From positions 124,001 through 188,000 of the IMG/VR virus record IMGVR_UViG_3300033571_009404: DNA of 64,000 nucleotides. One strand, written 5' to 3'. Below, one piece after another: positions 2,998 to 5,278 of the stretch. How positions within the stretch are numbered: the stretch's first letter is position 1; each line of letters begins with the position of its first letter. Both the position numbers and the translations under genes were made by a program. Under the pieces are notes generated by a model that ran no database searches, had not been told where the DNA came from, and saw nothing but the letters and a program-made list of their open reading frames with translations.

Positions 2998-3470
2998 CCA
3001 CCGCCACTGAAGTTCTCCACAAGTTACCAGATGGCGCTGAACTTGGTCCACTGGAGGCAAAAGATGAAGTTCTGTCTGAACTCATCGAGGCATATAACGA
3101 CCGTGTAGAGATCCGGCGTAACTCCTGCAATGTCACGTTGAAGAAGTTAACCCCGGAATCTACTGGTGCTGACTTGAAGACGGAAATCACCAAGCTCCCG
3201 ATTGAAGATCAGTTAGAACTGCTGCAAGCTTATAAAGAAGGTAAGAAGGATAAGACCTCTGAAGAAGAAGCAGCAAAGGAAGAACGACAGCACAAATGGA
3301 AGATCATTGACAAGTTGACCGATCTGGGCATCACTGTCATCTTTCTGATTGTGGTGACTTATTGTTATCATGGTATCACCACTGGTAACTGGAACAATGA
3401 AATCATTTCCAAACTGATTGATGTCAGCGTTGACTTGATCAAGTACTTCTCAGGAACTAACAACTCATGA
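2994..3470 (+). CDS. membrane protein, holin candidate
   Basis: One TM (LGITVIFLIVVTYCY) followed by an amphipathic helix; translationally coupled to the spanin-like pair. Confidence 0.4.
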   Translation: MTTATEVLHKLPDGAELGPLEAKDEVLSELIEAYNDRVEIRRNSCNVTLKKLTPESTGADLKTEITKLPIEDQLELLQAYKEGKKDKTSEEEAAKEERQHKWKIIDKLTDLGITVIFLIVVTYCYHGITTGNWNNEIISKLIDVSVDLIKYFSGTNNS

Positions 3471-5278
3471 AACCCTCTCTGATCCGAAATGCTTTCGGTA
3501 AACGGCCAGTGAAGTTCTTACTGCCCACTCCGGAAACAAAATTCACGGTCTCTTTGGAAGAGATCGCCACTGGCGTAGCCGCACCTGAAGTAGAACACGT
3601 GATCTATGGCCGTCTGCTTGATCTGGGTCAGTTAGCTCGCGCTTCTCACATGGAAAAGCAAGAGCAATGGGAAGTCAAAGTCCCAAAGACCAATGACAAT
3701 GCCACACGCGGTACCATTCGTGTTCGCAAGACCATGATCGAAGGCAGTCCGGATGAATACACCCTCTGCGGTAAAACTCCCGCAGGCGATGCATCCAATC
3801 CACTGGAGCGTAAGGAAGTTCCTATTCCCTGCACTCAAGACATGTTCGATGTCATCAAATCCATGGCGTCAGCCGGGATGCGTAAGGATCGTTACTTCTT
3901 CCCGGCTACTGCCACGGGCGAAGTCATTCCTCACGATGCTGCTAATCTCGGTGATCCCATTCCTGAAGACCAAGCAACAGATGCAGCGCATGCTGAAGGC
4001 GACAAGTGGGTCATGCCTTTGAAAGATGCTGTTACTGAGCACAAAGATCTGGTCAATGCACTGGAGTCTCCCGATAAGTCTGACGATCAGAAAGAGATCG
4101 CAGAACAAGGCGGTGAACTCAAGCGCATGGAAGCTGCTGAAGCCGAACAAGAGAATGTGGCAACTGAAGGCGATACAGTTGACATGATCAATGCATCTTC
4201 TCACTGGTTGCCTGAACTCGACTTCACCAAACAACCTGGCGTCTTCAAGAAGCAAGAAGTGGTGGTGGAAGCCATCATCTGGACGGGTAAGAATCTGGCT
4301 CAAGTCCAAGCTTTCTTGTCGGGTAATGCCAAAGCTGGTGAAGAAATTGTCATCAGTGAAGATGACGGCAATGCTGATACCGATGGTGAACTGCTGATCG
4401 ATACACTGGAAGATGGTGAAGGTAAGCAAGTGCAGCACATTGCTTCTCCTGGCGATTACATCATCAAGGGCGTCAAGGGTGAGTTCTATCCGTGCAAGCC
4501 TGACATCTTTGCTGAGACGTACGCACAGACCAATCTGGTGACACTGGAAGAATTGCCTCCTGAAGGTGTGGAAGCAGAACCCACTGGTGAACCCAGTGAA
4601 GCACCCGCACAAGCGGCACAAGAACTCTCTACCAATGCATCGCCTCTGCAAAGCCCGCAAGCTGAGCCTGAAGGTCTGGTATGGGAAGTTGACTTGTTCC
4701 TGAAGGAAGACGGTTCGTACTACGACTGGGTGAAGATTGATCTGGAAGTCGGTAAGGGTAATGAGAACATGCCACTACCCCCGCTGCCTCTGAATCTGTC
4801 TGACATCATCGCAGCTCCGTATGGTCAGCGCACTGAAGCCGAGGAAGCGACTGTTTCCAATCTGTACTCCACGATCTTCGTAACCCGTAATCCTGGCGCT
4901 ACACCTCTGTCGACTCAACCGACTCCGGCATTCGATCAGTCCAAGGTTGCAGAAGATGGCACTCCTGCTGAAGGTACTCCTGCTGACAGCAATGGTACTG
5001 GTGCCGCACCGGAAGGTGTCAATGATGTTGAAGTAGATCCGGCTGCTAAGGAAACTACTGAGGAACCCACCGCTGGTGAACCTCCTGCTGAAGAGAATGC
5101 ACCTGATGCAGAAGAACCACCTGTTGGTGAACCTCCGGAAGAAGCTACTCCTCCGGCGGAAGATGAAGCACAACCTGAGACTCAACCTGAAGAAGTTACT
5201 GAACCTACCGCTGAAGCTCCTAAGGGACGTCAGCAACAGTTCACTGACGATCTGAAGCAAGCTCTCGGTCAAGACTAA
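3467..5278 (+). CDS. CYTH-like (triphosphate tunnel) protein with a large internal insertion and an acidic Pro/Glu-rich tail
   Basis: Motifs EVEHV, IRVRK, RKDRY and WEVDLF...KIDLEV match the CYTH motif order, but RY and WEVD are separated by ~255 aa. Confidence 0.6.
   Translation: [603 protein letters not shown]

Follow-up and report, generated by a model that had tools for sequence, protein, structure and literature searches.

The open reading frame (ORF) at positions 3467..5278 (+) of the analysed window, a stretch of 64,000 nucleotides covering positions 124001-188000 of IMG/VR virus record IMGVR_UViG_3300033571_009404 (a complete record of 310,114 bp with terminal repeats), encodes a protein of 603 amino acids, here termed P0001, whose core is a divergent member of the CYTH/TTM (triphosphate tunnel metalloenzyme) family present as a single copy in this 310-kb phiKZ-like jumbo phage. 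The core is interrupted in its beta6-beta7 hairpin by 253 amino acids that carry a relative of the small phage protein family PGDYG, so that a rare nested architecture has been assembled from two parts which are both already known. With a probability of about 0.6, P0001 is best understood as a putatively packaged, predicted CYTH/TTM phosphohydrolase with an independent, tethered PGDYG-like accessory domain. The reading frame contains no internal stops, its ATG shares nucleotides with the stop codon that ends the upstream ORF 2994..3470 (ATGA), and the motifs named in an initial annotation of the DNA were found in place (E41-x-E43 at nt 3587, RKDRY at nt 3881, W406-E-V-D...K423-I-D-L-E within nt 4682-4747); coordinates of all features are given in Table 1.

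The site of the insertion could be located to the residue. In an alignment with seven orthologues (named sources: Burkholderia phage SURPRISE13, Xanthomonas phage Xoo-sp14, Ralstonia phage RSL2, Burkholderia phage FLC9), the positions corresponding to residues 149 and 403 of P0001 adjoin in the relatives, and the same adjacency was obtained when 11 uninterrupted IMG/VR loci and two insert-bearing relatives were aligned. BLASTP against ORF078 of phage RP31 yielded two collinear high-scoring segment pairs (residues 26-150 to 21-133 and 404-474 to 135-203), and the family profile matched the phage genome in two pieces (profile positions 7-130 at window 3539-3919, E 5e-43; profile positions 129-210 at window 4670-4921, E 2e-25) that abut at profile positions 130 and 129. 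Taken together, the adjacency in relatives, the collinear segment pairs and the abutting profile pieces define an insert of 253 amino acids without loss of a single core residue. The initial annotation had described the two halves as normally adjacent and had proposed a comparison with orthologues lacking the insert: in this comparison the flanking halves are collinear and directly adjoining, and they are contiguous in every other relative examined, insert-bearing proteins apart. Its placement of the insertion in a beta-hairpin loop likewise held, since in the structural model of the uninterrupted orthologue L008 (206 amino acids) the insertion point falls in the loop 123-128 between strands 112-122 (K-x-R) and 129-136 (E-x-D), i.e. 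in the beta6-beta7 hairpin, which sits at one end of the barrel. In 95 short family members (31-54% identical to the reference), from which the residue conservation of the family was derived, the spacing between R118 and E131 (reference numbering) amounts to 10-31 amino acids, with 12 in 68 of them; in P0001 it is 264.

Two other proteins, P0004 and P0005, were seen to share the insert (51-54% identical to P0001); they are the only ones among the best 150 of 932 family representatives, to which the inspection of the family extended, that span more than 400 amino acids in this way. The insert-bearing relatives come from syntenic loci of phages of about 300 kb, which was confirmed for P0004, encoded at a fully syntenic locus (L035) of a 298-kb phage. 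Conservation among the three proteins is graded, with 64-76% identity in the core, 55-69% in the inserted module, 23-45% in linker 2 and 36-38% in the tail; linker 1 of P0001 is 57% identical to that of P0004 and 33% to that of P0005. For linker 2, which is poorly conserved, the values against the two relatives are 45% and 23%. The acidic character of both linkers and the long Glu/Pro tail, as previously annotated, were evident from composition (net charge -19 over 106 and -10 over 45 amino acids; 32 D+E and 21 P in 127 amino acids). No domain was detectable in the tail (residues 477-603); in relatives the same place is taken by acidic linkers followed by variable C-terminal domains. Within linker 1, a segment at about residues 176-236 (window about 3992-4174) is well kept in P0004 and missing in P0005; it holds a probably helical, Lys/Glu-rich stretch around 'EHKDLV', and tblastn matches in Xanthomonas phage Suba and others run from the module into it, so that the captured unit may exceed the module proper. 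The uninterrupted orthologue at L016:5971-6705 shows about 8 extra residues in the same beta6-beta7 hairpin and further extras in two other loops, which shows the barrel to be permissive in its loops in general.

An architecture as unusual as this calls to mind a mis-assembly, two genes fused through an error in sequencing, or an intein, intron or mobile element that is taken out before the protein acts; beyond the unusual architecture itself nothing was found in favor of such an artefact, which deserves practically no credence. The gene is a single open frame and the identical protein occurs on 7 contigs; the same architecture, with in-frame linkers of differing length, is found in two proteins that are only 51-54% identical; no intein, endonuclease or other Pfam domain was detected; and the relatives of the module are ordinary small phage proteins. 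At the DNA level, neither direct or flanking nor inverted repeats nor a shift in GC content marks the insert as mobile. An artefact is excluded and the nested feature is real. A search of the phage genome with the family profile revealed no second, uninterrupted copy of the core.

The assignment of the core to the CYTH/TTM fold is based on the uninterrupted orthologue. The AlphaFold model of L008 (alignment of 14 sequences; mean predicted local distance difference test score, pLDDT, 83.7; predicted template modelling score, pTM, 0.79) consists of helices and eight main strands (residues 21-29, 40-51, 61-70, 76-84, 91-97, 112-122, 129-136 and 142-152) and accordingly presents the eight-stranded antiparallel beta-barrel tunnel that is the hallmark of CYTH/TTM proteins (PMC8233210); for P0001 the same tunnel would follow from the alignment. 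In a Foldseek search the best matches of this model were CYTH/TTM enzymes, with the barrel-like Mediator subunits Med18/20 lower in the list. VIA-align placed NE1496 at Z 9.8 (root-mean-square deviation 3.5 A, 141 of 144 residues), followed by AtTTM3 (Z 8.4), SaTTM (Z 7.9), Med18/20 (Z 6.4-7.4), class IV cyclases (Z about 6) and the mimivirus RNA triphosphatase (Z 4.8), and an independent placement by ESM Atlas gave CYTH clusters as neighbors (TM 0.62-0.66). The sequence signal is weak. A profile of the 95 members searched against PDB sequences retrieved NE1496 first (E 0.002), with the K, K-x-R, E-x-D and E-x-E strands paired; neither a phmmer search with P0001 nor the first profile of 14 sequences found a CYTH protein among PDB sequences. 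The Pfam CYTH profile PF01928 matched 16 of the 95 members (best E 4e-7), remained below its gathering cut-off for L008 (E 0.035) and P0003 (E 0.0018), and found no match in the phage genome. The initial reading of the flanking halves as a tunnel barrel of the CYTH/TTM type is hence borne out by fold and weakly by sequence.

The family itself is large: phrog_14791, a family of unknown function, matches P0001 in two stretches (N-terminal part E 4e-37), and of the 932 cluster representatives that an exhaustive profile search collected, 754 score at E<=1e-10. The about 930 clusters derive mostly from phiKZ-like jumbo phages, among them phages of Ralstonia, Burkholderia, Xanthomonas, Vibrio, E. 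coli (Goslar) and Pseudomonas; the occurrence of CYTH triphosphatases in jumbo phages has been noted before (Iyer et al. 2021, PMC7824862).

The residues expected to line the tunnel are strongly conserved. In the 95 members Q46, R64, R66, K82, R118, D133 and E151 are invariant (reference numbering), E20, E22, E45, W47, E93, K116, E131, K147 and D149 are conserved in at least 90% (K116, E131, K147 and D149 in at least 92%), and sixteen charged or polar tunnel positions are kept at 83-100%. Charged residues recur at i, i+2 spacing on every one of the eight strands (E-x-E, R-x-R, K, E, K-x-R, E-x-D, K-x-D-x-E), the hallmark of the TTM proteins. According to the alignment, P0001 has retained all conserved tunnel residues, in its N-terminal part E41/E43 (nt 3587-3595), E66-Q67-W68, R85/R87 (nt 3719-3727), K103 (nt 3773), E117 (nt 3815) and K140/R142 (nt 3884-3892, within R139-K-D-R-Y from nt 3881), in its C-terminal part W406-E407-x-D409 (nt 4682-4693) and K423-x-D425-x-E427 (nt 4733-4747). 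The metal-binding glutamates of the ExExK motif are present as E20/E22 in 94 of the 95 members, the remaining row being gapped, and correspond to E41/E43 in P0001; the basic and acidic patches (R-x-R, K, K-x-R and the later acidic pairs) align with the strands of NE1496.

With regard to the subfamily, the initial annotation had left open a triphosphatase or a cyclase; the former is favored by the motif rules, the latter is not. Class IV adenylyl cyclases are distinguished by an HF motif four residues before ExExK and by replacement of the central tunnel arginine by a small residue (Vogt et al. 2021, PMC8233210). No member of the 95 has HF upstream of ExE and both tunnel arginines are invariant, so that by these sequence rules a cyclase role, as class IV (CyaB-like) adenylyl cyclase, is unlikely. 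A thiamine triphosphatase is disfavored as well, because the tryptophan of the WxRxR motif is absent in all 95 members (mostly R, S, Q, C or N; T83 in P0001). The lack of both HF and the WxRxR tryptophan, together with the invariant arginines, points to a phosphatase-type TTM protein. A structural kinship closer to Cet1-like enzymes than to the CYTH branch was likewise not supported (Z 4.8 for the mimivirus enzyme versus Z 8-10 for inorganic triphosphatases), which would still allow an activity towards RNA.

The inserted module was recognized by phrog_419 (E 4e-23) as well as by phrog_1810, phrog_4502 and phrog_4159, and has at least 7,997 homologues (7,997 of 8,000 scored candidates of the protein collection at E<=1e-3); these are mostly stand-alone proteins, mostly of 85-105 amino acids among the 120 listed, and reach up to 58% identity, in keeping with its earlier recognition as a widespread stand-alone phage protein. 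A tblastn search with the whole protein matched 686 phage records, the majority via the module, whereas in the phage genome itself the module profile found the sole copy at window 4241-4540 (E 1e-39). The AlphaFold model of the module (pLDDT 80.6) matches in the BFVD database many predicted viral structures, several of them named 'PGDYG protein' (E ~1e-7); no counterpart was found among solved structures (Foldseek against PDB, best E 1.0; wide VIA-align search, best Z 3.2), and a marginal profile match to 4obm reached E 0.24. In a Pfam scan the module itself gave no match; PF14083 weakly matched 41 of 107 of its homologues (best E 5e-4), and the module reads P-G-D-Y-I where the PGDYG family has P-G-D-Y-G. 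It is consequently regarded as a relative of PGDYG (PF14083), short of a scored member. In the literature library that was searched, no paper mentioning PGDYG was found.

Free module genes occupy accessory slots, e.g. next to the portal gene of a pneumococcal phage or, in a Clostridium phage, between the terminase subunits. Homologues of the module are fused to inorganic pyrophosphatase, WDGH, Panacea and Tad2-like domains, and a structure search of the Atlas found homologues in clusters with Acb2/Tad1-hairpin, Sequestin, DUF551 and WDGH domains; Pfam scans that covered ten module proteins of medium size and another ten of the long core proteins gave no partner domains of informative value. 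Experiments have shown Sequestin and Tad2 to be nucleotide sponges, and fusion to a sponge has served to discover new ones (bioRxiv 10.1101/2025.07.12.664507). From the fusions to sponges and inorganic pyrophosphatase, the business of the module would most likely be nucleotide or signal handling in phage-host conflict; it is probably concerned with nucleotides or signals, which is offered as a lead. Identification of the module itself with a Tad2-like (PF11195), Acb2/Tad1 or Sequestin (PF21825) sponge was rejected, as these are fusion partners without a match in sequence or fold, and TadIV-1 and Lockin were considered with nothing linking either to the module. An 84-amino-acid protein consisting of the module only (L026, Gordonia phage DatBoi gene 51) is annotated as 'MazG-like nucleotide pyrophosphohydrolase', the label also given to phrog_4159; this label may have been carried over from a fusion and is probably a misnomer where the short proteins are concerned. 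In BFVD, one region of A0A8S5S940, a viral protein of 372 amino acids named as QueE-like preQ0 biosynthesis enzyme, matches the fold of the module, which makes for another link to nucleotide or base metabolism.

The context that the initial annotation had overlooked is that of a jumbo-phage family with one member in the virion, the RP31 protein, and with extra domains that are usually C-terminal and not within the barrel. RP31 ORF078, a core-only orthologue of about 36-41% identity, has been detected in purified virions using LC-MS/MS (liquid chromatography-tandem mass spectrometry; 6 peptides, 23 kDa observed versus 22.9 kDa expected; Table S3, PMC5468394). Many relatives continue after the core with an acidic linker and then a C-terminal domain of unrelated type; in two of ten long relatives this is PF12699, the phiKZ internal head protein (E 2e-8 and 2e-9), which a Pfam scan showed to be absent from P0001. 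Upstream of the gene lie genes for a virion protein and a RuvC-like resolvase and spanin-like genes, and downstream, on the opposite strand, four tail-fibre-like genes, an order that is kept in RSL2, FLC9, SURPRISE13, RP12 and the phage of P0004; the neighbourhood of P0001 is one of late structural and lysis genes.

On this basis the barrel of P0001 would still close despite the 253-amino-acid insert and would work as a phosphohydrolase that depends on a divalent metal and takes a triphosphate-bearing substrate, most likely inorganic triphosphate or NTPs, because the nearest structures hydrolyse these, with 5'-triphosphate RNA as second choice. The protein would be produced late and packaged, to be released with the DNA into the host. 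The module would fold independently, contribute a second function and be tethered to the rim of a tunnel opening, and its role would equal that of the variable domains which other family members carry at the C-terminus; it would not serve as an allosteric lid, since the long, poorly conserved acidic tethers suggest a second domain that is loosely attached.

Several observations weigh against this interpretation. None of the 95 members has the lysine of ExExK, the position being taken in most of them by V (54), T (19), E (9) or I (3), and in P0001 by V45. Pfam scans of P0001, as a whole and in four pieces, gave nothing useful, PF01928 having no match even at E<=10; the ESM Atlas model of the full-length protein is poor (pTM 0.36), and closure of the barrel with the insert in place is read from residue conservation only. 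The detection in virions concerns one distant, core-only orthologue (RP31 ORF078) and not P0001, and in Goslar and pVa-21 the gene is located among RNA polymerase, helicase or DNA polymerase genes and not among structural genes. Finally, the fusion partners of the module argue for its function by association only.

Among the alternatives, the initial annotation had suggested a possibly regulated or ligand-targeted enzyme; in such a ligand-gated enzyme the module would dock at the mouth of the tunnel and there open, close or target the triphosphatase upon ligand binding. The location of the insertion hairpin at the end of the barrel, next to the strands with K140/R142 and E407/D409, would be suitable for such a function, TTM proteins are known to open and close during catalysis with elements at the tunnel end tuning their activity (PMC8233210), and the module has been kept in all three insert-bearing proteins. 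The tethers of 106 and 45 residues are, however, acidic, variable in length and poorly conserved, one relative even being without part of linker 1, and other members carry unrelated C-terminal domains, which suggests interchangeable cargo; regulation by the module therefore appears rather unlikely, albeit not far-fetched. A complex prediction with N-half, C-half and module as three chains (score 0.01 versus a mark of 0.34) spoke neither for nor against docking. Somewhat less probable still is an RNA 5'-triphosphatase that cooperates with the phage RNA polymerases, the packaged TTM protein trimming 5'-triphosphate ends of transcripts from phage or host with the module as adaptor to RNA or polymerase. 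RNA triphosphatases do occur among the TTM proteins (PMC8233210), the Goslar member has an RNA-polymerase-beta-like gene and an SF2 helicase immediately upstream, and phiKZ-like virions package RNA polymerase, the virion list of RP31 containing polymerase subunits along with ORF78; against this stand the weak likeness to Cet1-type enzymes given above, the variation of gene context among phages and the lack of a capping transferase near the gene.

An ejected counter-defence enzyme of a 'catch-and-destroy' type, whose module, as a hitherto unrecognised domain binding nucleotides or immune signals, would capture a phosphorylated signal or nucleotide at the tunnel mouth for the tunnel to hydrolyse in the first minutes of infection, is suggested by the repeated fusion of module homologues to Tad2-like, Acb2/Tad1, Sequestin and inorganic pyrophosphatase domains; it is at present a speculative and unlikely extension, which, if true, would make the stand-alone PGDYG-like family a new class of phage anti-signalling proteins. 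A catalytically inert barrel, serving like Med18/20 as structural, packaging or binding scaffold in a protein that is a string of passenger domains, would account for the family-wide loss of the ExExK lysine, the lack of an above-threshold Pfam match for P0001, the Z scores of Med18/20, which are nearly as high as those of the enzymes, and the fusion of some relatives to internal head proteins. Yet the sixteen tunnel positions are maintained in members with no more than 31-54% identity to the reference, and they comprise the two metal-binding acidic pairs as well as every basic phosphate-binding position aligned with NE1496; as conservation of this kind is unexpected for a mere scaffold, an inert barrel is improbable.

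The known systems closest to P0001 are compared in the following. With the CYTH/TTM proteins (PF01928; NE1496 = NeuTTM, PDB 2fbl and 3typ; AtTTM3; SaTTM) the core has in common the eight-stranded tunnel with C-terminal helix, the E-x-E of the first strand, and the R-x-R, K, K-x-R and two further acidic pairs that line the tunnel, NE1496 being both the best structural and the best profile-to-sequence match. It differs from them by its marginal sequence similarity (E 0.002 for the family profile, none for P0001 alone), by V/T/E/I in place of the ExExK lysine, by extra N-terminal strands, and by the beta6-beta7 insert and acidic tail in P0001. The members of the jumbo-phage family (phrog_14791; RP31 ORF078, RSL2 ORF085, Xoo-sp14 gp98, Goslar gp163) possess an orthologous core, of 30-54% identity to P0001 in the orthologues examined, and share the acidic linker after the core; in contrast to P0001, P0004 and P0005, the only family members seen with a nested module, their halves are adjacent (10-31 residues from R to E) and extra domains, if any, are C-terminal. 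Synteny (virion protein, RuvC, spanin-like genes, then the gene) is in common with Ralstonia, Burkholderia and related uncultured phages, though not with all phages of the family. The module in turn resembles the PGDYG family (PF14083; phrog_419, 1810, 4502) in size, predicted fold and the signature G-D-[YW]-I-I-K-G...[11 protein letters not shown], but is embedded inside another domain instead of being free or terminally fused. Accessory domains on a TTM core are also known from E. coli YgiF (CYTH-CHAD) and plant TTM1/2 (kinase-TTM), and P0001 may be likened to the phage 'polyvalent proteins', which unite unrelated conflict domains on one polypeptide and are possibly delivered with the virion (Iyer et al. 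2017, PMC5512222); in all of these the domains are arranged end to end, whereas in P0001 the accessory domain is nested in the predicted catalytic barrel.

Table 1. Coordinates of the gene for P0001, its parts and other features of the window (an empty cell means that no entry is available).
Feature	Position in window	Strand	Basis or remark
Whole gene	3467..5278	+	603-amino-acid ORF; identical protein on 7 contigs; syntenic orthologous locus L035
N-terminal barrel part, residues 25-149, strands beta1-beta6	3539..3913	+	Family profile, phrog_14791, invariant columns
Linker 1, residues 150-255 (106 amino acids), acidic, net charge -19	3914..4231	+	Composition, alignment
Inserted PGDYG-like module, residues 256-357 (102 amino acids), net charge -10	4232..4537	+	PHROGs, profile, model
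Linker 2, residues 358-402 (45 amino acids), acidic, Pro/Ala-rich, net charge -10	4538..4672	+	Composition, alignment
C-terminal barrel part, residues 403-476, strands beta7-beta9 and C-terminal helix	4673..4894	+	Profile, alignments, BLASTP
Glu/Pro/Ala/Thr-rich acidic tail, residues 477-603 (127 amino acids)	4895..5275	+	32 D+E, 21 P
RuvC-like resolvase	1608-2216		Precedes lysis-like genes
Three small lysis-cassette-like genes	2189-3470	+	Order conserved in RP12, RSL2, FLC9
Four consecutive tail-fibre-like genes (419, 391, 391, 536 amino acids)	5986-11298	-	
SbcC-like gene	13728-16292		
UvsX-like recombinase	24781-26250		
ORF of 2,140 amino acids	37000-43422	-	
Phage multisubunit RNA-polymerase beta subunit, then ORF of 1,485 amino acids	43498-49568	+	phrog_2986, E 8e-190 (beta subunit)
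Tail sheath	60596-62698		

The three lysis-like genes encode, in this order, a protein of 157 amino acids with an N-terminal membrane helix, a lipoprotein-like protein of 112 amino acids with matches to Rz-like spanins (E 6e-7), and a protein of 158 amino acids with a C-terminal membrane helix, the stop of which overlaps the start of the gene for P0001. The tail-fibre-like genes look paralogous, with an N-terminal domain in common and repeated 'NPH' motifs, and the same four-gene array is found in the phage of P0004 (L035); the matches of this domain to phrog_2163 and tail-fibre families come from a scan of the first of these genes only. In nucleus-forming Goslar the family member (L027, gene 00163, 297 amino acids) directly follows an RNA-polymerase-beta-like gene and an SF2 helicase, a neighbourhood different from that in the Ralstonia and Burkholderia phages and in the phage of the window. 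The RNA polymerase, tail sheath, SbcC-like and UvsX-like genes of the window are typical of phiKZ-like jumbo phages; virion proteins are encoded nearby as well.

Domain insertions inside catalytic beta-barrels are uncommon, and the present case indicates that the TTM tunnel tolerates 253 residues in its beta6-beta7 hairpin; this natural split site may be useful to protein engineers, as well as for the study of tunnel opening and closing. About 930 clusters of jumbo-phage proteins that are 'hypothetical' in all cultured-phage records examined can now be read as predicted phosphatase-type CYTH enzymes, and, with at least one family member carried in the virion, a packaged triphosphatase would be an easily testable part of early phiKZ-like infection. 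The family of the module ranks among the most abundant uncharacterised ones of small phage proteins; the module's physical linkage to a predicted triphosphate hydrolase in P0001, and elsewhere to nucleotide sponges, provides the concrete hypothesis that this family may act in the handling of nucleotides or signals.

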